A stretch of DNA of 32,000 nucleotides from Paramicrosporidium saccamoebae KSL3 (taxonomy: Eukaryota; Fungi; Cryptomycota). Within the stretch, counting starts at the first letter, position 1. Every line of letters begins with the position of its first letter. Where the stretch lies: assembly GCA_002794465.1 (NCBI GenBank), contig MTSL01000134.1:15495-47494 (forward strand), in the 5' to 3' direction. The position numbers were made by a program, and so were the translations under genes. Shown one piece after another: positions 2 to 22,977 of this stretch. A model generated the notes under the pieces. The model was not told the DNA's origin. It searched no databases and saw only the letters and a program-made list of their open reading frames with translations.

Positions 2-1272
2 TTACATTCTTACGATACGCACTTTGCCATCATCAAAGCTAGCGAGGAGGAGATTGGGTACCTCTACCAAATCAAATATAGCGTTTTCTTCCATTCCAAT
101 GGGCAATGAGGCCAGTAATTCGCCCTTGCGACCGTCCCAGACCATTATGGTGCCGTTTAGACATCCCACGGCAAGACAGCCCTCATTGCTAAGCCATGTG
201 TAACTTGTCACCCCATCCATCTCTCCATCTCCCAACACTCCCCTTACTTTGTAATTGTTCGCATCAAACATGTGCACCGTTCCGCCCAAAGAGCCGGCCA
301 TCATAATAGAATGTCCCTTCATGAACGAAACACATTCCACGGCAGCCTCGCCCGTACTGTGTTGCGACAGTATTTGCTGATGTCCCAAATGTAGTGCTGC
401 AACCATTCCGTCCGAAAAACCCACCAACGCCACCGGCATTACTGGATGCACAGATAGTGACAGCGCATCTCCAGGAAGCTGGTTGCCTGTGTAAGTGATG
501 GATGCCGTGCCGTCCTTTGGATCCCAAACAAAGACGACGCCGTCGCCACCCGTAACCAGCTGTTTTCCCGAAGGGGAAAAGGCTCCGCAGGTGGAGGTGG
601 TGGCATTTCCGGTAAATACGTTCATGCACTTTCCCAACTGAGCGTTCCACATCCAAACGGTTCCGTCTGCGCTTCCAGCTGCTAATACTGGTCCCTTTGG
701 ATGCCAATCCAGCCACTAAAATGATTAGTCAACAAGGCTCCGAGTACAGTCACTTCAGAGGGACCCTCAAGTACGTGGACACAGCTTCCTTCCGTGGTCC
801 AGATACGAACAGTGCCGTCCAAGCTACCAGTGGCCAGTAATTTCCCGTCAGTACTAAACTTGACATGTTCCACCGTATCAGTGTGGCCACACAGTTCTGT
901 AAGAATGTCCACTTTGAGGGTATCAGTGTCGTCGAGTCGAAAAAGAACGGCCTTGTCGTTGCCACCGCCCGAGGCAATGAGTGTAGGGTCGTGCGGGTTG
1001 ACGGAAAGCGAGTAAGACGGATCCCCATCATGCAGTTCCAACTCTGCAGCATACGGCACCACATCATCATCCATAGTGGCGTCGACGATCATAGGGTCCT
1101 CGCCATCATATTCTTCCAAAATGTCGTCCGAGTTGAGTAGCGCTTCCTCCTCATCAACCAGCGCTTCCTCTTCATCAAACAACGCTTCCTCCTCATCAAA
1201 AGAACCCCCCTCTTCTACATCAACTGCTTTTTTAGGGTGCTCATCAGCGGCATCTTTATATTCCGAGGTCAT
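2..1272 (-). CDS. SQT1: WD40 protein of the AAMP/Sqt1 family (Rpl10/uL16 chaperone)
   Basis: Exons 1272-748 and 715-2. A 32-nt intron at 716-747 (GTACTC..CTAAT..TTAG) joins ...LEGPSEVT to WLDWHPKGPVLAAGSADGTVWMWN, the typical Sqt1/AAMP sequence. Acidic N-terminus followed by WD repeats; TAA stop at 2-4. Confidence 0.85.
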
Positions 1273-1301
1273 GTCAGTCTACCCAGACCCTGGACAAATT
1301 T

Positions 1302-4037
1302 CTATTTATGGACGATGCTATTTACATATTCTTCGGCTGCGGCAATCACTGCTGCATCGACTTGTTCTTGGATTGGGAATGGAGTGGGATCCTTGACTAT
1401 TTGACTTTGCTCACTGGATAGAAATACAGGAAACCCGTGACGGGGATCATAGTACATGAACGAAATGTCCAGCAGCAAAACTTGCATCTACACATGATTA
1501 GACAAATCGTCCCAGTTACATTTTTGACAAACACTGTGGATCTGTTTCGCAGCAGCTTGACTGAAGCCACCTTTTTACGTCCTATGGCAAGCCATAAATG
1601 ATCCGATTCCCATCGAACGACCACGCCAAGAAGATCATAATCCTCCTGCTCCTCTAATAATTCATTTGGATTAATCGGAGGTCTTCCGGTAGGAATTTTT
1701 TCAGTCTGATAGTCTTTGAGGAAAAAAATACGGGTGGTCCGCACTGAAGATATATACACCACATTTCTTTTTTTGATTGTTGGCTTCATGCTGGTGATCT
1801 GTAGAATAGATCCCTCCACAACCCTGGAATACATTTCGGGATTCGAGTCCCATAATGTAACAATTCCAATATTCAAAGCGCCCGGCTTTCCGCAGCAATC
1901 GGCAACTTTAAATTTGACAGTCATCCGCACGCTGATTATTTGGTCTACCGACTTTGATTCGGTGTAATCTTCAGATCGTGTCAGGTTGTCAAGCTCCTCT
2001 TCAGTAACTGTTTGTCTTTGCCCCGATTCTCTCTCGACCATGTACAGTGCCGGGTATCTACGAATGACAGCAACCTGAAGACAGGATATCAGTCCCCCAT
2101 CGGCGTCGACTGAAGACAGAGAAACAATAAACGACACGCTTCGATGTCGGCCCAGCTTGGCATGCCACCGAGCCGGTCGAGTCGAGTTTCCGAAAATCTT
2201 CAATCTTACCTTGTCCTGTGCATCTAGAATGTCGGTGGCCTCTTCAGATACGACCTGCGCAAGGGACACTTTTAGTTTTTGACCGACCTTGATTTTCTCT
2301 GAAGTAATCAACCTTTCAATTGACAGGTCATGGGTAACCTTGAGCGAGTACCATCCATCGGAAAGGCTCATTGCACAGTCTGGTTGAAGGGAGGAAACGA
2401 ACAAGACCATGTATGCACTTGGACTGTCATCTCGCTCCGCAATCTTTTTCAGAATCGATCTTTGTGCCTTGTTGATTTCCCTGTCATACCTGTAGCACAA
2501 CTGTGAAATGACCGTTTCAGTGTTTAGGGACATGCCGCAAAAATCGGCAATACCAGTATTATAATAGGACAAAAGCTTCCAGATGATCATAAACATGTGA
2601 TTTTGAATCCACCGGACATCCAAAGATCCAAAACATTGCAGTGCCGAGGCATACACGTTGGAAAAGACCGGACCAGTTGCGTTCTGCTGTTGATTCTGCC
2701 GTTGATTATGCTGGCGATTATGTTGGCGATTCTGGCATTGATTCTTACAATCACAGAGACACTTCCTTTCTATATGATTATGAGGATTCAGCAAGGATAT
2801 TACCTGGAGGAACGCAAATGTCAAAAGTCAGGGTGGAGCATTCACGAGGCGGCGTCTTTGTAGAATTGAGTTTTGCCATAAATCCCGACCTTTCTACGCC
2901 CTTGACAAGAGCGGTCTCGAAGGGATTAATCAGTGAAGGGGATTTGAATTGTGGATTCGCAAGCTTGGTCTTCTTCGGTGCCTTTACATCGAGAGGCGCC
3001 TTCCATCCTTTAGTAATAGACCCAGGCGGTCCAGTAGCAGCATCATGATCACTGTTCACTGAGGACAATATTTTGGATGCTTTCGCGATGGCTGCCGATG
3101 ATGGCGTAGCAATCTTCCTCCCTGAAGCCGAAGAAAACATTGAAGTAGAGTTAAAGTCGCTACCAATCGAGTTCTCGATGGACAGAGGCCCGATCGCCCG
3201 TCCATCCGAGAAATTGTCTCCACTTGAAAATATCTGGTCTGCCTTTTTCAAAGCATCCTTTGATGGACTCTTAATCCTTCTCCCAGCGGCTGTTTGGAAG
3301 GACACTTTAGGCATGTTTTGAGGTGATTGGAAAGACAAGTCGGTAGGCTGAAGAGACAAATCGGTAGGTTGGAGAGACAAATCGGTAGGCGGGTGAGACA
3401 AATTGGTAGGTTGGAGAGGCAAACCAGTAGATTGGAGGGGAAAATCAATAGCCAATTTCAATTCTTTTGACGGCGATTTGAATTTTGTTGTTATACGAGG
3501 CGTATTACTATCTCTCAGCAAGGATTCTGCCCTGGAAATCGCTTCGGCAGAAGGACGATCAATCTTCCTCCCTGCCGCGGTTGCAAATCCCACAAAGCTC
3601 ACTGGCATCTCGACTGGCAAATCCGCCGTCGTCCTCCGATTTGCAGGCGAGGGCGGTGGGATGGTCTTTCCGCCAGCGGTCTTGAATTCCTGTGAAAATC
3701 CGATTGGCTGCGATGGGATGGCTAACATGTCGTCATCAGGACAATCACAGTCGTCAAAGAGCGTTGGTGTAGCCGGCGACAGGATTAGCTTGGAGGTGCG
3801 CTCAATGCAAGGCGTTTCATATTCCGACTTCCACAGCGACATGATTTGATTCTGCGTTTGAGTAGAAAAGGGCTGAAAGTCAAAATCCTCCCCCAAGTTT
3901 TGTAATTCAGAGGGCGCAGCATTTGCAATCGCATCTTGCAGCCGTACCCATCCACCAGCACAAATGTCGGGAGCAGTGTCCTCTGGCACAGAGTATTTGC
4001 CTGCCAGGAATTCCTCCAGTGGCACTGGGTCCCGCAT
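1302..4037 (-). CDS. BRCA2: BRCA2/Brh2 homologue, about 889 aa
   Basis: Exons 4037-2804, 2769-1520, 1487-1302 (introns 34 and 32 nt, total 2670 nt, in frame). BRC-like repeats FxTAxGK/RxI. Helical-domain motif WIQNHMFMIIWKL. OB1 motifs QLCYRYDREI, ILKKIAERDD, LSDGWYS, NSTRPARWHAKLG. OB2 IRRYP...TLWD. OB3 YDLLGVVV. Confidence 0.93.
2689..2748. repeat. 12-bp tandem repeat, about 5 copies, inside BRCA2 (Gln/Asn/Arg tract)
   Basis: gttgattctgcc gttgattatgct ggcgattatgtt ggcgattctggc attgattcttac; minus strand encodes KNQCQNRQHNRQHNQRQNQ. Confidence 0.75.
3333..3437. repeat. 21-bp tandem repeat, about 5 copies, inside BRCA2 (encodes LQPTDLS units)
   Basis: Unit GAGACAAATCGGTAGGTTGGA with variants; protein reads LPLQPTNLSHPPTDLSLQPTDLSLQPTDLS. 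Confidence 0.85.
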
Positions 4038-4068
4038 GATAAAGCTAATATCCCGAAATTTCTTTTAT

Positions 4069-5780
4069 TTACAAGCGATCATCATCAGTGTATGAGGAAC
4101 AAAACAGTCGGTAGAGTCTTTTAGACAGTACAAGACCAAATTTGCGCTGCGATTCGGATACTTCCCATTCCTTAAAGTAGTGTTCACGGGATTTTTCAGT
4201 GGCGAGTGACTGGTAGTGTCGCCACAATGACAATGCTGATGGAAATTTCTGGGTGATCGCGGCTGCCTTTTCCACAGTAAGTTGTCGGATGGAGAGGAGC
4301 TGCTTCATAAACAAATCTTTGATGGACAAGTTGGCCGACTTACTATTCATCTGAGTGAAACATCCGAAACTCTGAAACAGTCGTCTCCCTGTCAGCTTGC
4401 CCTCTGCCTCTAACTTGGAAAAGTAAGCGTCCCGTATAACAGGAGCGCCCATTATTCCGGCATGGAGGGATTCTGCTGCTCGATTTGTTATATCGATGGA
4501 TAGGGTTATTAAGAACCGTAAAGTCTCCTCAATGCCACTTGTGTAGCGTAGATGGAGACCATCCACTATCTGGGTATGCACAATAGCAGCATCAAACTTG
4601 TCCTTGCCAATGTTGCTAAAATCTGCCGAGCCCGACTTCTCCACCAAGTAGATTAAATTCTTGATTCCAGACGATCTAAGGCGAAACTACAAATATGTGA
4701 CACTTTGCACAACACTACCTTTTGTTCTATGAATCGACCATCGGGAATACTCGCCAACAAGTCATCCTCCCGTTTTCGCTCCACAATGTAATCTAGCACA
4801 ATCTCATCAGGTGCCTCTAAGCATTAGAAGAGTTTGATTCGCATACGGACGTGAGGTTTTGCGCGAGCAATCCACATAAAATCACCCAGCTCTAGACATC
4901 TCTGTTCCGAGGGTATCCCTGCGCTTTGAAGCCGATTAATAATAAAGTCTCGATCTTCCCTGGATTTGACCTCACGCGTGTCAACGAGCAAAACAATGTC
5001 AAATTGGCTTATTGTAAAGGTTTCAAAATCGGGGCTTCCCAAAGGGTTCATTTCGACCTCTTCGTCAGCAACAGAAGGAGGAGACTCGGGCATCGGCGCT
5101 GAGCTACGCCGCTCTCCCGAATTCCACAATCGCTCAGCAAGCTCTACTCCAGTATCGGTGAGGGAGAATCGCGCGGGAATGGAACATTTCTCCACAAAAC
5201 CTTTGGCTATTAGAGTTTTGATAGCTCCTTGAATTGGACAAAACGGTCCCTCGTCCATTGGCGAAAGACAGTAGGCCTGTCCCTGCGATACAATTTCTTG
5301 CTTCAAAAGATAGCCCTTTGGGTTAGGATGATGCTTCTCCAAGTGCAGAGCAATCAACATGGCATAGGGTCCAGATCTGAATGCGGGAACATATTCCTTG
5401 ACGACTGCTGCTCTTCGTCTTTTCGGTGCTGGTTCTACAACCAGTGGGATTGTTTGTGGCGGCCGTGGAACTGACCCGCCATCGTCCACAAAACGCTTTT
5501 CTAGTCTATTTCTGATATTACTCCCAATGCCATGTAGCTTTTCAAGCTGTCCGAAATCCGTCACAGACGCGTCAAGCTCCAGCAGGGACATGAGCGCCTA
5601 CCACCTTAGACACTGCCAATGGATTACCCGTCGATATACAAACTGAAGCCTGTCATTACGGGATGCGGCCTGTTCCTGCCACTCCAGCAGGTAGCCGGCT
5701 ATCTGAGCGTTTGGGCTGGATGCCACTCGATCCCTGATTGATGCTCCTCCTTGGCTAGCACCTTTTGCCATTGCCACCAT
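4069..5780 (-). CDS. MUS81: MUS81 structure-specific endonuclease, about 539 aa
   Basis: Exons 5780-5628, 5597-4847, 4816-4719, 4686-4069 (introns 30, 30, 32 nt; 1620 nt total). N-terminal HhH (LHGIGSNI), winged helix ([14 protein letters not shown]), ERCC4 domain ([44 protein letters not shown]), C-terminal HhH. The start could be the second ATG at 5771. Confidence 0.93.
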
Positions 5781-5901: not shown

Positions 5902-7650
5902 ATGGAATCCCGAGAATATGGATATGGTACTGCCTTGATTCCCAAGACTCTTACGAATTATATAGTGCCCCCCAGTGACCCAAGACTAGGAGGACGGTCT
6001 TCCAGCGCAGGATACGGTATAATATGGATAGAACACTAACATGCAGACCTTGGCCGTACCTCGAGCTATGATGACAGACGTGGCCGCGAAGCTGACCATA
6101 GTCGCCACCATGGAGGTCGAGACCGAGATAGAGACCGAGAAAGGGACCGGGAAAGAGGCCGAGAAAGGGAATCCCATAGAGAACCCTACAGAGAATCCCA
6201 CAGAGAGCCCTACAGAGAATCCCATAGAGACCGTGACCGTGACAGAGACCGACGTGACAGAGATAGACACGACGGACGAGAACGTCGTTATGACGATAGA
6301 GAACGACGTCGCTCCCGTAGCAGAGACGATCGTCGTGGTCGCGACTACGAGCGTGACAACGGTCGGTATTTCCGTGACGGTGGCAATGGCCGACGCCGTG
6401 ACAAGAGTCCTATCGCCCTCTTTGATAAATATTCAGTGGAAAATCTTAGTCCCTACCGTGGAGTGGCTCTCCCACTGGAGGAGCGACAGCGTGTATTGAA
6501 AAATTGGGATGCGGCACCAGCTGGATTCGAGAGGATTACTGCGGACAAGGCAAAACTGACTGGACTATTTCCCCCTCCAGGAAACATTGCCAAGATTACC
6601 AATTTTGTGCCACCGACACTGGACCCAACCAAGGCTGCCATGTTGGCAATGCTGACCAATACTACACCCGATACTGCGTCATATCTCTCATCAGGGGCGG
6701 CTTTGTTTGCGCCAGCATTATCTAAGCAAGCGAGACGAGTGTATGTGGGCGAAATCCCAAAGAATGCTACCGAGGACGAGATTGCCGATTTCTTTAATCA
6801 GCGCATGGCAGCCAATCAGTCGTCCACTGCCGGAATATATGTCCTGGGAGTGGAAATTGCTGGCGATCGGGATTATGCCTTTGTTGATCTGCGATCGCCC
6901 GAGGAGGCCGAGTTAGCCACTAAACTTGATGGTGAGCACTTCCGTGGCCATCAAATTATTGTACGTCGTACCCGTGAATACCAAACGGTTAGTAATGGTG
7001 GGCCTGAAACTCAAGCAGAACCGTCAGAGAATAATCAACTTGTCATTTCGGGAATTCCAAAATTCCTAACTGAAGCACATTTGAAGTACCTGCTGGCTCC
7101 GTTTGGACAAATCAAATTCTTGCGCGTTCTCCATGACGAGAGTCTCGGCACGGAGACGTTTGGTGTTGCTGTCCTCGAGTTGGATGATCCGGCTGTAGTG
7201 GAGCCGATGAGAAAGGGGCTGGATGGGTTTGACCTTGGCGAGCATCGTCTAGTCGTCAGGAAACTACCAGACTGTGTTGATGACGAGCAAGTAGCCCTCG
7301 CCCTGTCGCTATTCTCTCTGACACCTGGAAAAGCAACAACTGACCCGTCTCTTGTGATGCAGTTGCTCAACATGGTCACTACAGATGATCTTACTAATGA
7401 CCAAGACTATGAAGACATCATTGCCGACATTCGTGAAGAATGCGAACAATATGGAGACATTGTCACCATTCACGTACCAAGACCATCATTAGAGCACCGA
7501 GTAGCGGGAATTGGCAAGATTTTTGTCGAGTTTAGAAAAGTCGAAGACTGCATGCGGGCAGTCTCTGAGCTGTCTGGCCGATTGTTTGCTGATCGGGCTG
7601 TGCTGTCATCATACTTTCCTCTCGAAAAATTCCACCAGCGCATCTTATAA
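5902..7650 (+). CDS. U2AF2: U2AF large subunit (U2AF65)
   Basis: ATG 5902; 30-nt intron 6017-6046 (GTATAA..CTAAC..CAG). RS/RD-rich N-terminus in frame with ORF 6436-7650. ULM KNWDAAPAGFE, RRM1 RRVYVGEIP / YAFVDLRS, RRM2, and C-terminal UHM QLLNMVT..DIREECEQYG..GKIFVEF. A possible extra intron lies at 5927-5965. Confidence 0.92.
6167..6240 (+). repeat. 12-bp tandem repeat in the U2AF65 RS region (RESH/REPY units)
   Basis: agagaatcccat agagaaccctac agagaatcccac agagagccctac agagaatcccat. Confidence 0.75.
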
Positions 7651-7765
7651 TTGTTTATCAGAAATAAAGCAAGTTATATTCCTTGCGGTCCGTATGTGAC
7701 GTAGAGGTAGAGGTAGAGGCAGAGGATTGGTTAGTCGGGTATTTGACGTAGAGGGTTGATTAGTT

Positions 7766-7866
7766 GCTGGGTATTTGAGGACAGTGAGATGTGTATCCAT
7801 ACTATTATAGGATTAGCAGTGAACAAGCCCCCTTCCCGTCTGTGGTATTAACCCCACTACGCGACA
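7766..7866. repeat. Dispersed 101-bp non-coding element, copy A
   Basis: Matches the reverse complement of 14905-15005 at 97/101 positions. Weaker similarity continues to about 7744. Preceded by (GTAGAG)n at 7701-7724. Confidence 0.95.
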
Positions 7867-7886
7867 TATATTATTATTGAGGATAA

Positions 7887-8834
7887 CTAAATCTTGTTCA
7901 GATCAAATTCTGGAAAGTGCTTAAGCACAAACTGTTTGAGAGACTCTGAACAGCGTGCCAATTTCAGTGCTGCTGGCTTCGGTGGGGGTATATTTGGATT
8001 GACAGAGAAATACCACTCCAAAAGCTCTACGTGTCCAAGTTCAATGGCATCCTCGATTGAACGCCTACACAGCCGCAATTTAGATTCGCGTTGGTGTATA
8101 TAACGGAGAGCATCTAAACGGTTATTTGAAACTAGGGTCCGGAGGGTGTTCTCATTCAAATCTAATTTCTCCTTTACGTGTTGCAGGAATAACATTAAGC
8201 ACTCTGATTCTTTCGAGTTGATCGCGTAGTGGAGCAGATGCCATTTCGGCACCCATAATCCTTCTTTAATTAACGAATGGATAATCTCAACATTTCCGGT
8301 CAAGATTGCAGTGAATGGTGTACACGCAATTTTTAGTTTGCATTCCTTTAAAAAGTTGACTACACGCAACGAGGCAAATAATGGGTCTATATCAGAGTAC
8401 TCGAACATGGACAGATCGGATAGAGTCTTTGTAAGATTGATTGCATCATAGTTGGCCAGATTATTTGAATCAAGAACTTGCTCAAGCAGCTCTGGCAAGA
8501 ATTCAAGTATTTTCGGGTTGTCCGCAATCAGAATGGAGTGGACATTTTGCTCAAGATCACTAGCAGAAAGTAAATCGGGATATATATCCCAAGCAGTGTC
8601 ACGAAACATGGCATAGTATAGCACACGCTCTGCAGATGATCTGCCAGGAATGGCAGGAATATTGTCAAAGTTTCCGAGGAGCGCTGCTGACTCTAATGAC
8701 ACCTTAAAATCGGCTAAAGCTTGAGCTTTTGAATAGTTTTGAACAAGCAGCTGCTCTTCAGTGAGTCCATCTGAGCAACTGGCGGGTACGAAATTTGGCG
8801 AAATGAAAAATAGTGCGACGAGTGACAGATTCAT
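7887..8834 (-). CDS. Secreted ankyrin-repeat-like orphan protein, 315 aa
   Basis: First true ATG at 8834 (the ORF track starts at GTG 8843). Hydrophobic N-terminus MNLSLVALFFISPNFVPASC. C-terminal ankyrin-like helices AILTGNVEIIHSLI, LLHYAINSKESECLMLF, VSNNRLDALRYI, AIELGHVELLEWY. Intronless. Confidence 0.7.
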   Translation of the reverse strand: MNLSLVALFFISPNFVPASCSDGLTEEQLLVQNYSKAQALADFKVSLESAALLGNFDNIPAIPGRSSAERVLYYAMFRDTAWDIYPDLLSASDLEQNVHSILIADNPKILEFLPELLEQVLDSNNLANYDAINLTKTLSDLSMFEYSDIDPLFASLRVVNFLKECKLKIACTPFTAILTGNVEIIHSLIKEGLWVPKWHLLHYAINSKESECLMLFLQHVKEKLDLNENTLRTLVSNNRLDALRYIHQRESKLRLCRRSIEDAIELGHVELLEWYFSVNPNIPPPKPAALKLARCSESLKQFVLKHFPEFDLNKI

Positions 8835-8995
8835 GACTGACACGATTTTCCGGTTCCGTTACACACGGAATTGTGCGCTGGGGAACAGTAATTAATTACA
8901 AACTATAACATTATCGGCAGATTGCCGCAATTGCATTGATCCGAAAATTACTCTGAAAGGATGCAGCAGTTGTATCGGCCAAGCATCTATGGTTG

Positions 8996-9009
8996 GTTGC
9001 CCTGGCTAC
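8996..9009 (-). promoter_or_regulatory. RFX X-box consensus match
   Basis: Minus strand GTAGCCAGGGCAAC fits GTNRCC(N0-3)RGYAAC exactly; 161 nt upstream of the ankyrin-like gene ATG. Confidence 0.4.
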
Positions 9010-9279
9010 CCCGAAAATGCTTTGCAATACCCTCACGTCATCATAAGGGCGTCGTTGAAGCAGATACGGCTAGTACTAAACGACATGGGGATGGTACCCA
9101 TTATTAAATGGCATTTTCTCAGACAGTCTCTATAAGGGCGAGCATTGTTTTGGTCGAGTCGCACCTAAAAGAGCAATAGTGTTGTCAATCATACAATAAT
9201 ATAATGATCATTATTACAGTATTTGGACGCCTAGCTAAATCGGTAGCGTCTTCTTTTTCGCTTAATAGGTGCTCGATTC

Positions 9280-10107
9280 TTAAACTCTGCGTCCGATGAG
9301 TGAGCGTCCGCGGCTATGAGTGCGCTCCACGCCCTTCCGCATCGATCTCTTAGCCCCGTCATCGCCGTAACCACGCGGTCCCACAGCGCGACGGGTCCCA
9401 CTTTTGGGCCGAAGTCGACCAGATTGAGTGGATCTGCGTTGAATGTACTTTGAGCGACGACCACCGGTAGTACGGATAACAATGCGACCCCGCTTAGAGT
9501 TGGTGACGCGGCGACTGTTGTTGTCGCCAGTTGAGACGCTGGACGGGAAATCGTCCGAGCTAGACGACGATCTCGATGAGGAGCCAGATGAAGAGCTAGA
9601 AGATGATCCCGTGCCTGAAGATGACGTTCCAGTAGAAGTAAATGTAGAACTCATTGAAGAATAAGATGAGCTTGATGATGAAGACGATGCCCAAGATGAT
9701 GAAGACGAAGACGAAGACGAAGACGATGAATCAGACCCAGTGTAGCCGGATGAACCAGAGCTGCTACTTTTGCTGCTGCTTGAGCTTGAAGAGTCTGTCG
9801 AGACACTAGATCCCACGGACGAATACGAGTTGGAGCTGGAGCTGGAACTAGAGCTGGAACTGGAGCTTGAACTCGAAGACGAAGACGAAAACGAACTACT
9901 GGAGCTTGAGCGACGTCTACGGCTCTTTTCATGGCGTCCATGGCTCTTTCCACGACGTCCGTGACGTCTCTTGGTAGCAGCCGTCCAGCCTCGAGGCAGT
10001 AATGGGTGCACTCGGGTAATATCAAGCCCGGCATCTCCAGCGGGAGAGACTGAAGATGCACTGGCAATGACTAGGACAATGCCAGTAACGACACACTTTA
10101 GCAGCAT
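9280..10107 (-). CDS. Secreted Ser-rich / Arg-rich low-complexity protein 1, 275 aa
   Basis: Signal-peptide-like MLLKCVVTGIVLVIASA, basic block KRRHGRRGKSHGRHEKSRRRR, about 115-aa poly-Ser tract written with mixed TCN/AGY codons, Arg-rich C-terminus. Intronless. Confidence 0.75.
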   Translation of the reverse strand: MLLKCVVTGIVLVIASASSVSPAGDAGLDITRVHPLLPRGWTAATKRRHGRRGKSHGRHEKSRRRRSSSSSSFSSSSSSSSSSSSSSSSSSSNSYSSVGSSVSTDSSSSSSSKSSSSGSSGYTGSDSSSSSSSSSSSSWASSSSSSSSYSSMSSTFTSTGTSSSGTGSSSSSSSGSSSRSSSSSDDFPSSVSTGDNNSRRVTNSKRGRIVIRTTGGRRSKYIQRRSTQSGRLRPKSGTRRAVGPRGYGDDGAKRSMRKGVERTHSRGRSLIGRRV

Positions 10108-10345
10108 GATTGCAAAAATGCTCTCGTGGACGTTCCATTTTGAACTGATTATTCACTATACTGCATTTGGTGATTAATATTTATGCAACGCCACAATTTA
10201 GCACATGCAGCACTTATTACCAGAGACTGAGCGACGTCTCACATATTCAAAAATACGCGCAGAGACTGCAGTTTACTCAAGTCGTCATACTTAGTGATGA
10301 ATTAATATACTACTACTTGCTTAAATGAGTCTCTGCATTATTTGC

Positions 10346-11053
10346 TCAATAGCTGCTTGAGGTGCTACTGGTGCTCGAATATTTTGATGATGAGCTGCTG
10401 CTGCTGCTACTGCTCGATCCGCTGCTGTAGCTAGAGCTGCTGCTCGATCCACTGCTGGAGGATGAGCCAGAACTGCTGCTGGAGGATGAACCAGAACTGC
10501 TGCTGGAGGATGAACCAAAACTGCTGCTGGAGGAGGAGCTGGAGCTGCTGCTTGAAGACGAGCTTGAGCTTGAGCTTGAATGTCTACGGCGACGAGAACG
10601 ACGAGAAGAGCGTCCAGAGCGACGAGATCCTCTGCGTCCACGACGGCGCGAGTAGCCAGACGAGGAAGAGGAACTGGAAGAGCTCGATGAGCTAGAGTGA
10701 CGTGACACGAGGTAACTGCTTCCACTGCTGGAGGAGCTGGAGCTGGAGCTGCTGGAGCTGCTGGAACTGGAACTGCTAGAACTGGAACTGGAAGAATATC
10801 CCGAAGATACTGACGACGATCCGGAGGAGGAGCTGGACGAGGAGCTGTTGGCCGCGCGCAAGTTGCGAAGATTCTGCTTCACCAAAGCGGACCTCTTAAT
10901 AACCCGCGCAGTATATGGAGACACAGTCTTTCCCGATGACAATCTTGGCGTACCCACAGAGCGGTGTCGTTCTGTGCGCTTAGATTGCAGCCCACTCTCC
11001 ACACATCCAAACAGAGCCAACAGGCCGGTAAAAAGGGCGAGCTTGAATTGCAT
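10346..11053 (-). CDS. Secreted Ser-rich / Arg-rich low-complexity protein 2, 235 aa
   Basis: Signal-peptide-like MQFKLALFTGLLALFGCVES, basic linker, poly-Ser, RRRGRRGSRRSGRSSRRSRRRRH, then a second poly-Ser to the C-terminus. Intronless. Confidence 0.75.
   Translation of the reverse strand: MQFKLALFTGLLALFGCVESGLQSKRTERHRSVGTPRLSSGKTVSPYTARVIKRSALVKQNLRNLRAANSSSSSSSSGSSSVSSGYSSSSSSSSSSSSSSSSSSSSSSSSGSSYLVSRHSSSSSSSSSSSSSGYSRRRGRRGSRRSGRSSRRSRRRRHSSSSSSSSSSSSSSSSSSSSFGSSSSSSSGSSSSSSSGSSSSSGSSSSSSYSSGSSSSSSSSSSSKYSSTSSTSSSY
10451..10535. repeat. 24-bp tandem repeat in Ser-rich protein 2 (GSSSSSSS units)
   Basis: ACTGCTGCTGGAGGATGAACCAGA, about 3.5 copies. Confidence 0.8.
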
Positions 11054-11160
11054 TGTCGTCCGCGCGCCGGCTCTCCCTTTTTATTTGGGGTGGCATCCGC
11101 AATATAGGCGTATCGGGGTTCATTATAACCGTTTTGGTATATTTGAGGCATCACTTATAA

Positions 11161-13115
11161 ATGGATCGGGACATATGTGTCCTTAATTGGCGTGGCGGGG
11201 GTATGTTTTGGATGCTGCGGCAGTTGTGTGGGAAAGATGAGGCAAGGGAGGCGGCTTTCAGAGTGCCTGTGGAGAGCTGGGACGTTGATATTGCTAAGTT
11301 TTGTCGTGTATTAATAGAGTGTCTGATACAGGATCCTATTATTGGTGTGAGACAGGTCTGGTGACGTGTGGACGTCTGATTTTGTAGAGAGTGCTCAAGG
11401 TTGTCATTGACAATTTTTCCATGATTGTAAATAGCACAAATGTATCCGTTTTGTATGAAAAGCTGGAAAGGTGTGTGAATGACGACCTTGACCCTCATTG
11501 TCGAAGCTATGCCATGCAATTGCTTTGTCAGTGTGCTGGTAGCTATGCGGATACCACTGTGCAGGTGCGTGGATACGGCTCTGCTGTCGCTAACCAGACA
11601 TTAAAGCTAAAAGATGCAGTGTTCATTGTCCTTGGTACCATTATTGGCGACACACAGGCCCCTATTCGCGCCATGGCCTGCAACTTTCTCGGCAACATAG
11701 AGTCCAACGAACAGATACTCTGCCAACTACTCAGCAAGGAAGCGCCTGGCTCCATAAATGTGGATGGACATGACGTCGCCCTCCCATGGTCCTATTGTGG
11801 CAGTTTTGTTGTGGCCCTCGAAGACGAATTTGAAATGGTCCGACTTGCGGCCATTTCTGCAATTCGGAAGCTGGCACTCAAGTCAAAGAATTTTTCCACT
11901 CGAGCCGTCGAATTCCTAGTCGACTCGTTTCAGGATGAATCAGCGACAGTGCGGGTAGCTTCCTTCTTGGCGTTAGCTGACATTGTTGGATCTCACTCGG
12001 TGACCCTTTCGTTGTCGCCCGTGGAAAGTATCCTCTCGCATCTGGATGATACCGAGGCCGAGTCTAGAAGAGCTGTCCGCGTGTTGATATCGTCACTGAT
12101 CCTTGAGGATGAGGAGACACTGATCAAGATTTTGCGTTGTTTGCCTCTGGCCTTGGCAAAGTTTCCCGAGGAAGAGCATGAGTACTATGTATCACTCTTC
12201 GCTCTTGGGAAGCGAAATCCGAGTCTTGTCAACTCATCTTGTGGTCGACTCCTCAAGACGGAAAAATTCTATTTGATCCAAGAACCAAAGATTGAAGATG
12301 CCACCTATACAGTTCGACTTGCCGTCATTGTGGCAGCACTGCATGTCCAACCGCAATTCCATCCAGCCGTTCCAAATTTTGTCTTTCGGCATTATCACTT
12401 TTTGAAGATTAAATATGGAATTGCTGTGCCCAACTTTTACAATCATGAACTGTATGATCAATTTTACCAATCAAAAATTACTAAATCAACGCAAGCTGGC
12501 ACGCTTGAGGAGCGACGACAGAGCTTGCTCAGCAGGATTGCGTGCATGCTGAGACAGCCGAGCAATGTTACAGACCGTCAACGGGACACCTTGATAGCAA
12601 ACATAAAATACAATGAAGTGGGATTTCGGGAAGGATTTCAGGCGTTTCTCTTCACCATGGTCCAGAATCGAGGTTCTAATGACGTTCTGCTGGGCTTTGA
12701 AAATGTCTCGGTGGACTTGCAAGATTTTGTCCTTGGAAATGGACCTTTGGTTGTCGATGAAAGCATTCAGAGACTTTCTGTTAATATTTATCCAATCTCT
12801 TATACCATGGAGAGACCCTACAAGTGTAGTGGGAAATGTCCAATGCACCTAGTCATCAAAGGCAAGCTATCGACAACTACGACAAAGACTATTGCTGCTC
12901 AGGTCAACTTTTCTAATGGACAGTCGCAAAGATTCCCAGCCGAGATTACAAAAGACAATGTCATAGTGTCGCTGCTAAAAATTCCTGCTGCTACAATAGC
13001 CAGCTTGGATTCTGGGCCGCACCAAATTGCGCTGACAATTTTATCAATAGACGAAAACTGTGCCTTTCCACTTGGTCTGTCCGCCTCTCTGTATATTGAC
13101 CTGAACAAACAATAA
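11161..13115 (+). CDS. INTS4: Integrator complex subunit 4 (HEAT repeat)
   Basis: Exon 11161-11355, 32-nt intron 11356-11387 (GTCTGG..CTGAT..TGTAG), exon 11388-13115. CGSFVVALEDEFEMVRLAAISA...AVEFLVDSFQDESATVR matches the remembered INTS4 CGAFVHGLEDEMYEVRIAAVEA...CLDFLVDMFNDEIEEVR. DATYTVRL and FRHYHFLK match DPAYIAVL and FRHYAYLR. The start codon is uncertain (11161 or 11203). Confidence 0.82.
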
Positions 13116-13151
13116 AATAGACTTTAGTACTGTACACTCACTATACGAATC

Positions 13152-13394
13152 CTACTGTTTTTCTAAATCGCCAAAGCCCAGAGTGCTCCAGTCATCCTTG
13201 GCCATAAGTCCCTTGTCCATGCGACACTCAAAATACTCCCTCGCCAGGTCCCTACATGGTACCAGCTCCATTCTGTTCCTCTTTAGACACTTGAGATACT
13301 TGCCGACGAGGTCCTTGCACTCGCCATCGTGGTCCAGTGGAAATGCACCGTTGATGGGGGCTGTCCGGGTATGGTATTGCTGGGGAAGAGACAT
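13152..13394 (-). CDS. COX19: COX19 cytochrome c oxidase assembly factor (twin CX9C), 80 aa
   Basis: ATG at 13394 (the ORF track over-extends upstream). GAFPLDHDGEC-X9-C...C-X9-CRMDKGLM..DDW..LGF. Confidence 0.93.
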   Translation of the reverse strand: MSLPQQYHTRTAPINGAFPLDHDGECKDLVGKYLKCLKRNRMELVPCRDLAREYFECRMDKGLMAKDDWSTLGFGDLEKQ

Positions 13395-13410
13395 GGGTGA
13401 ATTCTGCTGA

Positions 13411-14601
13411 ATGTTGAGGGTAAGACTGGTCGCCAAGCGGCAAGAATATGTCGTTGAGGGACTGATGATGGTTCCAGACACGGCAGGCCCCAAGGAGCTG
13501 CAGGAGCTGCTGAATCACATGCTGGTGGATGCCCCACAGTTTGTGTTCCGGCTAGGCACCAAGGTTCTGCGGGGACAGTTGGACCTTCAACTTGCAGACT
13601 CTGGATGCTCCAAGGAGGACATTTGCGAAATTGGCTACGACTTGCCAGAAGAGGAGCCTAGGATAGAAGCGAGCATTGCCGAACCAGAATGGGTGCGAGC
13701 CGTCAGTGCCAGTGATGAAGGAGTCTTGACAGGCTCCTATGATCAGAGCGTCAGGTTCTACGCCAGCGGCAGTACCGAGCCGGTGGCACTCAAGGGAAGT
13801 TTTGATACAGTGACTGCAGTCTCGTGGATCAACGAGAATCGTCTGGTGGGCGGCAGTGCGGATGGCTCCCTCCGAGTGTGGAGTCGAAGCAACCCAGAAT
13901 CGCCTGAGCAAGTGCTATTGGGACATGTAGCAGCTGTGCAATGCATTCTTGTGGACGATAGTATAATCTACACTGCCGACTATGAGGGTTTTGTTTGTAA
14001 ATTTAGCACCAGCACCGAGGCGGCTGTCCTTCCTGTGGCACAATCGACACAACGAACAAAAAAGACCCGCTACTCCAGGCCTGGAGTTGCTCGAGAAGCC
14101 ATACCTACACAATCCTGCATCCCCCAAAAGGCGCATGAAAGTACCATTTCGGGTTTGGCAATGCATGAGGGCCACCTCTACACTTTTGGTTGGGACCGCC
14201 AAATCAAGCGATGGAAATTGCCAGAAATGGTTATTATGGCCACTTGGACCGCCCCAGATGCCATCTCGGCCGTATCGATGGACGGCGGATTGGCTGTAAC
14301 GGGCCATTCCGACGGCAGTCTTCATGTTTGGGATTTCACGAGTTCGTCCGTATCGTTAAATGGAAAAGACGCGGCTCATACGGGCTGGGTGTCGGGTGTT
14401 GTTCTGGATCCATTGGATCGAAATAGAGTCGTCAGCGTCGGCACGGACGGGGCTGTATTACTATGGGATAGGAAGGATCTGGCTGTCCCGGCAGCAACCA
14501 TTAGAGAGGCGTGTGCGAGCAAAGTACTTTGCGTAGATTGGCACGCCGACCTGCTAGCATATGGCGGCGAAGACAAGACGCTTGCCATCTACCGAACATG
14601 A
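13411..14601 (+). CDS. YTM1: Ytm1/WDR12 60S biogenesis factor (NLE/UBL domain + WD40), 396 aa
   Basis: N-terminal NLE-like VRLVAKRQEYVV...LQELLNHML...FVFRLGTKVLRG..L, EPEWVRAVS, LTGSYDQSVR, WD repeats. Confidence 0.82.
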   Translation: MLRVRLVAKRQEYVVEGLMMVPDTAGPKELQELLNHMLVDAPQFVFRLGTKVLRGQLDLQLADSGCSKEDICEIGYDLPEEEPRIEASIAEPEWVRAVSASDEGVLTGSYDQSVRFYASGSTEPVALKGSFDTVTAVSWINENRLVGGSADGSLRVWSRSNPESPEQVLLGHVAAVQCILVDDSIIYTADYEGFVCKFSTSTEAAVLPVAQSTQRTKKTRYSRPGVAREAIPTQSCIPQKAHESTISGLAMHEGHLYTFGWDRQIKRWKLPEMVIMATWTAPDAISAVSMDGGLAVTGHSDGSLHVWDFTSSSVSLNGKDAAHTGWVSGVVLDPLDRNRVVSVGTDGAVLLWDRKDLAVPAATIREACASKVLCVDWHADLLAYGGEDKTLAIYRT

Positions 14602-14645
14602 GCTGTACAGAATTTACAAGACAATATCCACTAGTGACCTCAATC

Positions 14646-14717
14646 CAGAATACCGAGAATACCCAGGATACTGAGAATACTGAGAATACCGAGAATACCT
14701 AGGATGCTGAGGATGGT
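14646..14717. repeat. 9-bp tandem repeat, 8 copies, downstream of YTM1
   Basis: cagaatacc gagaatacc caggatact gagaatact gagaatacc gagaatacc taggatgct gaggatggt. Confidence 0.9.
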
Positions 14718-14904
14718 CGCCTAGAAATGCCCCACGCCTACTAATAACAAAATCTCACTAATAGAATCTGTCAAGTAGTATCCACTCATAATTGACAATT
14801 CCAACCCAGATATATATGCTATCCTACAATCCAGTCCAGTCATAGCGAGGATGTGGCCTGTAAAAGAATCCCTTATTTTAATCAAACTGGCTCGCTCATC
14901 AAAG

Positions 14905-15005
14905 TGTCGCATAGTGGGGATAATACCACAGACGGGAAGGGGGGTTGTTCACTGCTAATCCTATAATAGTATTGATACACATCTCACTGTCCTCAAATAC
15001 CCAGC
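14905..15005. repeat. Dispersed 101-bp non-coding element, copy B (inverted relative to A)
   Basis: Reverse complement of 7766-7866 with 4 substitutions; weaker similarity to about 15028. Confidence 0.95.
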
Positions 15006-15119
15006 TAATCAATCAATCCTTTACATCACAAGAGGACCCTCTATATCGATTGGGTGCCACTACTTTACAATACCATCTCATAAACAGTATTCACTTATTA
15101 ATAGAATCCTTTAAATTAA

Positions 15120-17260
15120 TTAGGCAAATAGAGACCTTCCCAGCACATCGGGATTTTTAACTTTGAAAATGCGCACAATGTGACTATCAGTTGTGTATGC
15201 TTCGACAAGTGTAGAGAGTTTAGGATCGACGCCAGGAATGGGCTGCTGTCGGGCACGATCTACGGCCTGCGGACCCATCGTGCTAGCGACGCCATAATAG
15301 GTCATTTTGTACAGAATGCTTTCCTGCATCGCCTTGGGGGCCTGCAGATCCTGACGGTAGTCACCAGTGTCAGTCAAGTAGTCTTGTTCGCGAAGATCCT
15401 CGGGAAAGACGCCTTCAGCGATGCGAATCATCCACAAGAACTTGTTAATGTCGTCTCCACCGAACCCAGACATGGCTCCTGACAGGATCAGCACGTAGTC
15501 CGTGTCGAGTTGGCGCAGCACCGGATATGCCTTTCCCTCAGAAAGTGCCAATGCCTTTCCCACAGTGGCAATGTGAGTATTATTCCAAGTGTTATTATCC
15601 ACAATAGTGGTTCGATCAGCCATCCCTGCCAGCTGGTAGCCGTAATCCCACCAGGCAAGGATCTTGGCATCTTCGTCTGTATTACGACGCAGCCAGTAGT
15701 ATGCCTCGCGGAAATCGTCAATGATTCGGGGTTGGCCATTGCGGGGATCGGTGCTAGACATGATGATGGAGGGAGATGAGTAGGCGGAACTGGTTACCCA
15801 AGTGCAATGCCACATAAAGTAGGAGATCAGGACCACTGTGGGTGCCAAGACGGTGAACATTGAGAGTGCGCAGCTGCGAGTGTTCTTGGGGCCTGGTGTA
15901 TATGTGGAGAAGAGGACACTGGCGGAAATGGCACCCAAAACACACATAATGGGCGCTAGAGTCAGAATCAGGCGTACCATCACTCCGGCAAAGTATGTGG
16001 CGGATAGAATATACACTACGGGGAAAATGTGCTCATCGCGTCTTTGTTGGAAGCAGAAATACAGTCCCGCCGGTGCCATGAAGAGCAGCATGTGAAGATC
16101 AAGGAAAAACGAGCCCCAACTAGTGGGCTGATGTTCTGAAACTGAGGCAATGATGGGAATGTGCTTTCGTGCATAGCTAGTGTCCCAAAGCGAGTAGAAT
16201 CGGCCTGCCCAGGGAGCGATATACCCAGAAACGGACAATCCCACAAAAACAGCTGCAAGGACGGCACAAAGACCGATTGCAAGTCCGATAGTTAGCCGCT
16301 TGAAATGTTCTTCATGATCCACAAGTTGACGGACGCGATTAACAAAGGCCAGCAATTGCAGCAAACAGAACACGCCCATGGCGGCCATGTGTTCGCTACT
16401 GCGGGTGGGAGCAAGACCGACAAAGGGAATAGTCATTGACGCCAAAGTTCCGAGTACATAAAACGTGCAATACGACGTGTATAGGCGGGTGCTATATCGA
16501 CCCATCACCAGCAGAGCAAAGACGTGCAAGGGGATCAAGTTGATGATAAATACGTAGCCACCCCAAGACGACACCATATAAAAGTAAAAGCCCGCAGTGA
16601 GTGCGCCCCAAATGGCCGATCCCCTTTTGACTGCCCGGATCCAACAGAAGAATGTGGCCATCATCAAAAAGATTGCAATTCCCTCGTTATCATAGGAACC
16701 TGCCACAGAACGTGAAATGTATCCCGGACAAACAGCCATAAATGCGGCCGCTAAAAGGGCAGCTCCTCCGCCGGCCAGTTCTTTGGTAAGTAGGTAAGTA
16801 GCCACAGAGGTGAATCCTGCGAAAACTGGTGCCAAGAACACGCAAACATCACGAATGTCAATTCCCAAAGAGAGCACTGAATTTGCCACGTAATGCAACA
16901 CGGCAGATGTGATCATTATGCCTGGATAGACTGTTACTCCCACCACTCGGCCAAGCGGATACCAGGAGCGGTCATCAAACCAATTTAAAAAGGCGCTCCA
17001 TCCATTGTCGACGAGGTACTTGGTAGCACGGAAATTGAACCATGGGTCAAACTCGTGGATTACCGACTCGTACCGGATGACGGAGAAGAGGCGTGTACCA
17101 AATGCAACCAGCGAAATGACACTGAGCACTAAAATCTGCCATAGCACCAGGCGGTCACTGGCCTTGACCAGTATTCGGTCTACAATAAGCCCAGTCCAGT
17201 GAAAGTACCAATGACATTTAAGAGGCGAGAGCTGGTGGTCTTGCCAGCAAGAAACCCCAT
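15120..17260 (-). CDS. STT3: Oligosaccharyltransferase catalytic subunit STT3, about 703 aa
   Basis: Exon 17260-17209 (MGFLAGKTTSSRLLNVI), 29-nt intron 17180-17208, exon 17179-15120. Motifs IHEFDPWFN, SEHQP, WWDYGYQ, DNNTWN, DINKFLWMIRI. Confidence 0.96.
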
Positions 17261-20352: not shown

Positions 20353-20434
20353 GACACTATGGCCGAGTGGTTAAGGCGTGTGACTAGAAATCACATGGGC
20401 TCTGCCCGCGCAGGTTCAAGTCCTGCTGGTGTCG
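20353..20434 (+). tRNA. tRNA-Ser (anticodon AGA)
   Basis: Acceptor stem GACACTA/TGGTGTC, D arm TGGCCGAGTGGTTAAGGCG, anticodon stem TGTGA-CTAGAAA-TCACA, long variable arm, T arm GCAGG-TTCAAGT-CCTGC, discriminator G, 82 nt, followed by an oligo-T terminator at about 20438-20442. Confidence 0.97.
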
Positions 20435-21618: not shown

Positions 21619-21675
21619 AAGCATACATAACATGATAAATTTCCGATTTATACACCGTTTATTCTTGTGATATCC

Positions 21676-22078
21676 CTGTGACTTTGAGTGAGAGCCATAC
21701 ACTATCAACAGCAAAACCATCTAAGAGCGTGGATAGATTTACGATTTATATAACGCCTACTCACTGCAGTATCTCTGTGATTTTGATTGATAACAACATA
21801 ATATCAACAGCAAAGCCATCTAAGAGCGTGGATAGATTTACGATTTATATAACGCCTACTATTCACTGCGGTATTTCTGTGACTTTGGTTGATAACGACA
21901 TAATATCAATAGCAAAACCACCTGAGAGCGTGAATAAATTTACGATTTATATAGCACCTACTCCTCACTGCAGTATCTCTGTGACTTTGGTTGATAACAA
22001 CATGTTATCAACAGCAAAGCCATCTATAAGCGCGAATAAATTTGCAATTTATATAACGTCTATTCCTCATTACGTTGT
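21676..22078. repeat. Tandem array of four 99-102-bp units between the RPF1 and RPF2 3' ends
   Basis: The CTGTGA anchor recurs at 21676, 21775, 21877 and 21979. Units share ATCAACAGCAAA(A/G)CCATCT and TTTACGATTTATATAAC. Confidence 0.95.
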
Positions 22079-22977
22079 TCCTGTGCCTTTTCCACCCGCG
22101 ACTTTTTCAAAGCCTTCACTTTGCGCACTTGGATTGTGTCAATCTTCTGTTGTCCGACATGGACGCGTCCCAAGGTCTCACCCAGCGCAGTGGTATTGAC
22201 GTTCTTCTCCTTCTTCGGCTTCGCCTCCTTTGGCTGTCTCAGTGCCTGCTTCATCAGCTCTGGGGATGCAAATCGCGTGCGGCCAATGACCCAGTCGATG
22301 GACGGTCCCATCAGCTGCAACTCGATCAACGGCACCTTTGTCCCAGATTTCTTCAAAAAGATGCGGTACACCCGGAAAAGAACCTTGTCTGCAGTGGCGG
22401 TTACAGAGATGACAGATTCTATGCCGGCCAGGTTGACAGAGTCCACAACATGGCCACGGAAAAAGTCGAGCAGCATACTTTGCAGCATTTTATATTCGTC
22501 GCGCTGCTCAAACAGCTCTCCGTTGAACACAAAGGCAGGCTTCATACCAACCGCACACGTAGGACCAGCAATACTCTTGATAGACTGGAAATCCGCGATT
22601 CCGAGCTCAATCATGTCAAGAACATGGTGGTCAAACATTCTTGTAAGTACCAGGTTATCCGGACGCTTCTTGGAGTGCGTCGCCAGCATAACAAACGCAG
22701 CGTCGTTCCTCTGGGAGAAGAATTCTAGAGTAGCCTCACTCTCGCCACCCTCAAAGGGATGCACGGCGTTCTTCTTGAACATCATAAAGGCGTCTGGCTT
22801 CTTGAGGGAGTATAGGTCGGAGAGGGCCTCGTTGACGACGGAAGATGTCTTGGTGCCACGCATAAAGATCGAGCCCTTGACATCTTCGACAATTTTGGAT
22901 TCACGGTCGTCGAGGAAGCGCTTTCCACGGGCAGTTTTAGGTTTTGGCTTTTGCAGAGGGTCCTTGTTCCAAGTCAT
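22060..22977 (-). CDS. RPF2: Brix-domain 60S biogenesis protein Rpf2, 305 aa
   Basis: KPKTARGKRFL..RESKIVE, LYSLKKPDA, KKNAVHPFE, LEFFSQRNDA, HSKKRPDNLVLTRMFDHHVLDMIELG, IELQLMGPSID..IGR. Confidence 0.95.
   Translation of the reverse strand: MTWNKDPLQKPKPKTARGKRFLDDRESKIVEDVKGSIFMRGTKTSSVVNEALSDLYSLKKPDAFMMFKKNAVHPFEGGESEATLEFFSQRNDAAFVMLATHSKKRPDNLVLTRMFDHHVLDMIELGIADFQSIKSIAGPTCAVGMKPAFVFNGELFEQRDEYKMLQSMLLDFFRGHVVDSVNLAGIESVISVTATADKVLFRVYRIFLKKSGTKVPLIELQLMGPSIDWVIGRTRFASPELMKQALRQPKEAKPKKEKNVNTTALGETLGRVHVGQQKIDTIQVRKVKALKKSRVEKAQEQRNEE

Follow-up and report, generated by a model that had tools for sequence, protein, structure and literature searches.

The stretch of DNA analysed here, the window, covers 32,000 nucleotides (nt) of Paramicrosporidium saccamoebae contig MTSL01000134.1 (assembly GCA_002794465.1), its position 1 being position 15495 of the contig. 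A repeat search of the window returned two inverted arms, 7766-7866 and 14905-15005, each 101 nt long, complementary at 97 of 101 positions (96%) and with 7038 nt between them. This pair, referred to below as copies A and B of one short element, is by far the longest non-coding repeat of the window, and a 29-mer of its core occurs there exactly twice, for 0.00 occurrences expected. Both copies lie in spacers between convergent genes: copy A was found between the stop codons of a U2AF65-like gene (7650) and of an open reading frame (ORF) ending at 7887, and copy B between those of YTM1 (14601) and STT3 (15120). The parts of the two copies, together with the gene that ends ahead of each, are listed here.

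6436-7650, plus strand: 3' exon of U2AF65 (P0121, 'Mrd1p' in the annotation), with copy A in sense orientation behind its stop codon
7698-7743, plus strand: degenerate tail of copy A, which includes (GTAGAG)4 at 7701-7725 and a partial tandem duplicate of outer sequence from the element
7744-7765, plus strand: outer part of the 124-nt homology in copy A (TGACGTAGAGGGTTGATTAGTT), about 74% identical to copy B
7766-7866, plus strand: high-identity core of copy A, 97/101 to copy B, with the sharp terminus ...CCCCACTACGCGACA
14861-14881, minus strand: direct repeat 2 of copy B, TTAAAATAAGGGATTCTTTTA, lying 23 nt past the sharp terminus
14905-15005, minus strand: high-identity core of copy B, inverted relative to A, 97/101 to copy A
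15006-15028, minus strand: outer part of the 124-nt homology in copy B (local alignment, BLASTN)
15029-15079, minus strand: degenerate tail of copy B, in which CGATATAGAGGGTCCTCTTGTGA (from 15048 downward) matches CGATGTAGGTGGTCGTCTCTGA of a third copy, C; farther out the alignment is weak
15099-15119, minus strand: direct repeat 1 of copy B (TTAATTTAAAGGATTCTATTA, minus strand), directly past the STT3 stop codon, 17/21
15120-17147, minus strand: STT3, with copy B in sense orientation behind its stop codon

Anatomy of the inverted copies

Homology between the copies reaches outward past the core, to 7744-7866 and 14905-15028, over 124 columns at 91.9% identity (local alignment, BLASTN). The inner ends of both (..GCGACA) are sharp, no similarity being found past them when the two spacers were aligned. 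Toward the outer ends divergence rises, from 4 differences in the 101 positions of the core to 6 in the 23 of the outer part (Fisher p=0.003), and beyond the 124 nt the outer sides dissolve into sub-repeats. The sharp end of the element reads 5'-TGYCGCRTAGYGGGG (on the other strand ...CCCCRCTACGCGRCA), and the opposite end is made of variable GAYGTARAGG, GGGTATTTGA and (GTAGAG)n sub-repeats. In copy A, and in A only, this end carries a run scored as (GTAGAG)4.2 at 7701-7725 by Tandem Repeats Finder, and the partial tandem duplicate listed above aligns 7692-7707 with 7739-7754 at 15/16, GGGTATTTGA being found at 7737 and at 7769.

The 101-nt core begins 116 nt (A) and 115 nt (B) past the outer stop codon, and the 124-nt homology 93 nt (A) and 91 nt (B) past the stop codon of the upstream gene on the same strand. 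The stretches of 91-93 nt between stop codon and homology showed no significant similarity to each other (global alignment, score reached by 115 of 2000 shuffles). The geometry set out in the original prediction was thus borne out, namely the match of 7766-7866 to the reverse complement of 14905-15005 at 97/101, the sharp GCGACA/TGTCGC ends facing inward with degenerate outer ends, the (CCTCTA)n tail of copy A, which is the GTAGAG run above, and the location of both copies between convergent 3' ends, about 115 nt past the outer stop codons of U2AF65 and STT3. Its description of the genome as otherwise stripped of intergenic DNA was overstated, other convergent spacers of 300-440 nt being present on the same contig.

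Both flanking genes call for a remark on annotation. The U2AF65-like ORF (6436-7650) is 100% identical to the P. saccamoebae protein P0121; the name 'Mrd1p' given to it in the NCBI record is probably wrong, since JGI labels its close homologues as splicing factor U2AF subunit. When the STT3 ORF (15120-17147) was used in a protein search, the best match was a 79% identical Logan protein, and the organism's own annotated 754-amino-acid STT3 was not among the top matches.

The 7-kb block in sister lineages

Metagenome and Logan contigs bearing the nearest relatives of STT3 and U2AF65 were used as sister loci. Two of them, L004 and L007, whose U2AF65 is 77% and 62% identical to that of the window, carry MUS81/BRCA2, U2AF65 (+), minus-strand signal-peptide genes, INTS4 (+), COX19 (-), YTM1 (+) and STT3 (-), in the same order as the window. 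L001/L002 and L003 (STT3 70-72% identical) are collinear with the window over 11.6-21.6 kb, straight over copy B, and in L001 and L003 collinearity runs from INTS4 to Brix. The secreted genes follow the same pattern: L004 has three minus-strand signal-peptide ORFs at their position, the Ser-rich gene beside INTS4 keeps a homologous signal peptide (MQFKLALFTGLLALFGC in the window, MQLKFAVLAALLALVGV in L004), and L007 has a comparable Ser/Arg/Lys-rich secreted protein. Since order and orientation are the same in the sister contigs, we conclude that the 7-kb block, with its 'secreted island', represents ancestral synteny, and was neither inverted nor imported, nor delimited or moved by the repeats. 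The proposal that the copies are recombination sites which inverted or imported 7867-14904 is refuted by this comparison, in L004 and L007 for the whole block and in L001/L003 across copy B. The idea that they mark the boundaries of an island of secreted proteins fell with it, secreted genes being found at the same position in L004 and L007, and no rearrangement was seen between the repeats. As synteny is kept in independent assemblies, misassembly at either copy is also ruled out.

Spacer lengths in the window and in the sister loci were as follows.

YTM1/STT3 spacer: window 519 nt; L004 40 nt; L003 65 nt; L001 about 100 nt; L007 about 170 nt
Spacer downstream of U2AF65: window 237 nt; L004 125 nt

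The element was not found at any sister locus by BLASTN or nhmmer. A and B are additions to 3' spacers that are specific to this lineage. A further 260 nt or so of extra DNA lies at 14602-14860, from the YTM1 stop codon to the flanking repeat of copy B, with a tandem array of 9-nt units, (AGAATACCG)x6-7, at 14647-14714. This extra DNA is without equivalent in the sister genomes (YTM1/STT3 spacer of 40 to about 170 nt in all) and resembles nothing else in the window.

Several gene models of the region were also reconsidered. The ankyrin/DUF3447-like ORF at 7887-8843 (-), which has an N-terminal signal-like segment, is an orphan whose only database match is itself (PSACC_01907); 226 amino acids are annotated, an uninterrupted ORF of 315-318 amino acids is present, and the 315-amino-acid version was not on record in an exact look-up. 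The interval 8001-9000 is the lowest-GC stretch of the window (42.6%). COX19 (CHCH, 13152-13493, -), which is missing from the NCBI gene list for that contig stretch, and YTM1 (13411-14601, +) are divergent, with likely ATGs about 16 nt apart. At 8-5591 of the window (L008 4346-9929), the NCBI model joins MUS81, BRCA2-like and WD40 regions in one protein of 1717 amino acids, probably an annotation fusion because L004 and L007 have separate genes there. Finally, 4-5 units of about 102 nt each, which share 69-86% identity, are repeated in tandem at 21658-22090 (L025 16897-17420), near the junction of two convergent Brix-domain genes.

A third copy and the extent of the family

An nhmmer profile built from A and B was run over 243 kb of sequence, the sister loci included. 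It gave one further significant match (E=2e-6), copy C, in P. saccamoebae itself, at L025 5473-5642 (MTSL01000134.1 about 48839-49008), some 1.3 kb past the end of the window. Copy C is 71-74% identical to A and B, is interrupted by about 30 nt of inserted sequence, and ends in the sharp terminus of the other two (CCCCGCTACGCGGCA). It is located in a head-to-tail spacer, past the UPRTase stop codon in sense orientation and 90 nt ahead of the phospholipase D ATG; the homology begins 72 nt past the stop codon, and an AATAAA-like signal is found just ahead of this copy as it is ahead of the two others. The outer sequence CGATGTAGGTGGTCGTCTCTGA of copy C matches CGATATAGAGGGTCCTCTTGTGA of copy B, and the element is therefore longer than the 124 nt of A/B homology, about 170 nt. 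Conservation with copy C is concentrated in blocks, CTGGGTATTTG (11/11), GTGAGAT (7/7) and CCCCRCTACGCGRCA (13/15), and the GAYGTARAGG and GGGTATTTGA sub-repeats vary in number among A, B and C.

Three copies sharing one terminus are thus found in 43 kb of contig. A profile of A, B and C retrieved nothing further in these 43 kb of MTSL01000134.1 nor in 85 kb of sister loci. A scan of JGI metagenomes with two exact words gave 16 matches over just 18-23 nt, a chance result, and exact-word scans of GTDB genomes and IMG/VR gave no match. An 11-mer identical to the element head (TCGCGTAGTGG) at 8222-8232, inside the ankyrin-like ORF and 360 nt from copy A, was judged to be a chance occurrence (about 100 words against 64 kb). 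A literature search returned no description of transposable elements in P. saccamoebae. We conclude that the repeat is real and that it belongs to a family without description in the literature searched. Three copies of different ages, with one exact terminus in unrelated contexts and a variable sub-repeat end, present the anatomy of a short non-autonomous interspersed element.

Direct repeats flank two of the copies. For copy C, GAGTRGCTAATAAACA is found at L025 5650-5665 and 5408-5423, with 15/16 positions identical, a score reached by 0 of 3000 shuffles, and contains the AATAAA signal. The repeats of copy B (17/21, 81% alike) had a score reached by 42 of 3000 shuffles, which is marginal. 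Direct repeats of 16-21 nt fit target-primed reverse transcription, and not DNA transposons or long terminal repeat (LTR) elements.

Origin of the element

We put at about even the chances that A and B belong to a small family of interspersed repeats that are short (about 125-175 nt), non-coding, non-autonomous, retroposon-like and specific to the P. saccamoebae lineage. The family would have spread as a non-autonomous retroposon-like element, the sharp TGYCGC end being its 5' head and the repeat-bearing end a 3' tail varying by slippage. Insertion would make long target duplications, and copies would survive only in the 3' flanks of genes, because these are the only tolerant DNA in a compact genome. 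A retroposon akin, in the broad sense, to a short interspersed nuclear element (SINE) is favoured because the 16-21 nt flanking repeats fit target-primed reverse transcription. The likeness to SINEs and other non-autonomous non-LTR retroposons extends to the size, the absence of coding capacity, the one precise end and the one short-tandem-repeat end that varies between copies, the dispersed copies of different ages, the direct repeats at two of three copies and the accumulation in harmless DNA. Unlike SINEs, the element has no demonstrable RNA polymerase III (Pol III) promoter, no head related to tRNA, 5S or 7SL and no identified partner long interspersed nuclear element (LINE); its direct repeats do not abut the sharp end, and only three copies are known.

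The 96% identity of A and B would stem from a recent event, which may have been ectopic gene conversion of a tract of about 101 nt between older inverted insertions 7 kb apart; alternatively, one of the two may have been copied from the other, the tail evolving fast afterwards. With the core at 96% and the outer homology and flanking direct repeats at 74-81%, A and B look like older insertions whose core was recently homogenised. As in ectopic conversion between repeats, a 96% tract (101 nt) lies inside older 74% homology, one of its sides coincides with the homology end, and the partners are 7 kb apart. The case for conversion here comes from heterogeneous divergence, and a young subfamily with a fast-evolving tail would look the same.

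Several points weigh against a retroposon-like origin. No partner LINE or reverse transcriptase was seen in the DNA examined, no promoter was identified, and the orientation of head and tail is one that we infer. The search for flanking duplications, tested by shuffling, found none at copy A, and that of copy B is only marginally significant in AT-rich DNA. Moreover, copy-specific DNA of 23 nt (B) and 49 nt (C) parts the direct repeats from the sharp end, a gap that would not be expected from simple insertion. The copies number just three in the 43 kb of contig covered, and they span no more than about 26 kb of an assembly of 7.3 Mb. Gene space makes up 76% of the P. saccamoebae genome and repeats only 0.53%, mostly simple or low-complexity (PMC5701793); with so few repeats, the family must be low-copy or locally clustered.

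Among the rivals, the one that survives best, although we consider it unlikely, is a purely local duplication without any mobile element. A double-strand break in one spacer would have been repaired with an inverted patch of about 124 nt templated a few kb away, by templated insertion, template switching or ectopic gene conversion, and C would have been made earlier in the same way. This would account for the crowding of three copies within about 26 kb of one contig in a genome almost devoid of interspersed repeats (PMC5701793), and it agrees with the failure to find terminal inverted repeats (TIRs), short target-site duplications (TSDs) or coding capacity, as well as with the many small, local duplicates of TAATAGAATCC that crowd the spacer of copy B. 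Random repair patches, however, would not be expected to end at one exact terminus in three unrelated contexts, nor to be flanked by a significant 16-nt direct repeat as copy C is, nor to keep the same position and orientation relative to the upstream stop codon in all copies.

A further rival, which we rate somewhat lower still, is a functional 3'-flank module under selection, such as a terminator, an insulator, or an unstructured RNA made by RNA polymerase II (Pol II), the module being placed just past the poly(A) signal of certain genes. All three copies are in sense orientation, 72-93 nt past a stop codon and just after an AATAAA-like signal, and the similarity to the old copy C comes in blocks. 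As evidence on orientation only copy C counts, because an element between two convergent genes is 'sense' to one of them whichever way it points. The clustered GUAG/GUAA and UCUUG motifs of the tail may recall the Nrd1/Nab3 sites of yeast. Against selection for such a role, four sister lineages with the same genes lack the element in their orthologous spacers, the upstream genes (U2AF65, STT3 and UPRTase) share no evident function, and no conserved structure was found.

A related idea, to which we give about the same low weight, is that of a retroposon or domesticated module placed specifically at the 3' ends of Pol II genes, in sense orientation, some 40-90 nt behind the stop codon and right after the poly(A) signal. 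It would reflect safe-haven integration at termination or poly(A) regions, or a co-opted terminator or insulator; gene conversion would maintain the likeness of A and B, and the two could invert the 7-kb block between them, giving a rare isomer. Position-specific retroelements are known from compact genomes, as with the TRE elements found near tRNA genes in Dictyostelium and with Ty1, Ty3 and Ty5 in yeast. The present element resembles these in its similar distance and orientation to a landmark of the neighbouring gene (here 72-93 nt past the stop codon) and in its gene-dense genome, and differs from them in that the landmark would be the 3' end of a Pol II gene rather than a Pol III gene. Residence in 3' flanks is itself expected from survivorship, because the genome is so compact (compare the divergent start codons of COX19 and YTM1). 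The similar offsets from the stop codon hint at something more specific, yet with n=3 this pattern is equally well explained by survivorship bias.

A classical tRNA-derived SINE, or a Pol III non-coding RNA (ncRNA) gene, with internal A and B boxes is improbable in our view. In its favour, the head TGYCGCRTAGYGGGG, one of the best conserved blocks across the three copies, agrees with an A box at 9-10 of 11 positions, and the tail is composed of repeats. The 10/11 match to the A-box pattern TRGCNNAGYGG is indeed present, as had been noticed before, but matches of this quality number 20 in the window for 20.8 +/- 5.0 expected, so that the element holds one of many found at chance frequency. The B box proposed earlier did not stand: no match to GGTTCGANNCC, which would be expected 30-60 nt downstream, was found with up to 2 mismatches inside A or B, and the candidate GTTCACTGC reads GCTCTCCGT in copy C, the stretch not being conserved. 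No run of four T follows any of the three copies, and no relation of the head to tRNA, 5S or 7SL was detected by ARAGORN or by Rfam at E<=10. Rfam returned nothing relevant to the element at gathering thresholds over the whole window, and at E<=10 no match for A or B and only chance-level ones for C. In the window ARAGORN found nothing in the element and only a tRNA-Ser at 20353; this tRNA-Ser(AGA), 20353-20434, is the sole Rfam or ARAGORN match in the window, and is absent at the matching place in the gene lists of the sister contigs. Of the SINE-like or Pol III family of the original prediction, what holds is the dispersed family, with copy C at the same sharp terminus and the anatomy of one sharp and one variable end; the Pol III evidence does not.

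A structured ncRNA gene (snoRNA or snRNA) was considered and rejected as well. Single-sequence fold z-scores for A and B on both strands were -0.07, -0.20, +0.71 and +1.36, and RNAalifold on the three sequences gave -10 to -12 kcal/mol on both strands, with a positive, that is penalising, covariation term. There is no conserved fold, no covariation support and no Rfam family for the copies, and an H/ACA reading is disfavoured because A and B have ACA at the 3' end where C has GCA. A coding origin was likewise discarded: when 1.84 billion proteins were searched with the longest open frame across copy B (52 amino acids), a bacterial repeat protein was the only match, and a spurious one.

Solo LTRs, TIRs or a miniature inverted-repeat transposable element (MITE) of a DNA transposon, also suggested earlier, are very unlikely. 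A and B do start with TG and end with CA on the plus reading, and TA would lie on both sides of copy A if its boundary were at 7742. The TIR seen by eye in copy A (14/22) was rejected, its score being reached by 178 of 500 shuffles for A and 408 of 500 for B. As to TSDs, no short fixed duplication (TA, TWA, 2-10 base pairs (bp)) was found at both ends of every copy, TA..TA being possible only at A and TA flanks absent at B. No copy showed the 4-6 bp duplication of a solo LTR, direct repeats being 16-21 nt instead, and A and B run TGA...ACA while C ends GGCA. TIRs of a composite element of 7 kb would have their sharp ends outside, whereas those of A and B point inward, and the interior is ancestral synteny. 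Size, non-coding character and intergenic location recall Stowaway- or Tourist-like MITEs; their TIRs and short fixed TSDs were looked for in our copies and not found.

Least probable of all are recombination sites that inverted or imported 7867-14904, or an assembly artefact: a pair of 101-nt repeats in inverted orientation, with 7 kb between them, might in principle allow inversion, and 101 nt is a common Illumina read length, but all conserved genes keep the same order and orientation in independent sister assemblies, and the copies differ at 4 positions and in their tails, which a collapsed or duplicated read would not give.

The practical result is mostly negative and still useful, in that the repeats neither delimit nor have moved the 'secreted-protein island'. 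An interspersed family, however small, adds to the picture of P. saccamoebae, a parasite of amoebae, as almost repeat-free (PMC5701793). If A, B and C are a true family, they would be a rare sign of mobile DNA or ectopic recombination at work in Rozellomycota, which branch near the root of Microsporidia. Should the placement behind stop codons hold genome-wide, it would be of interest as an example of 3'-end targeting or co-option in a eukaryote with a compact genome.

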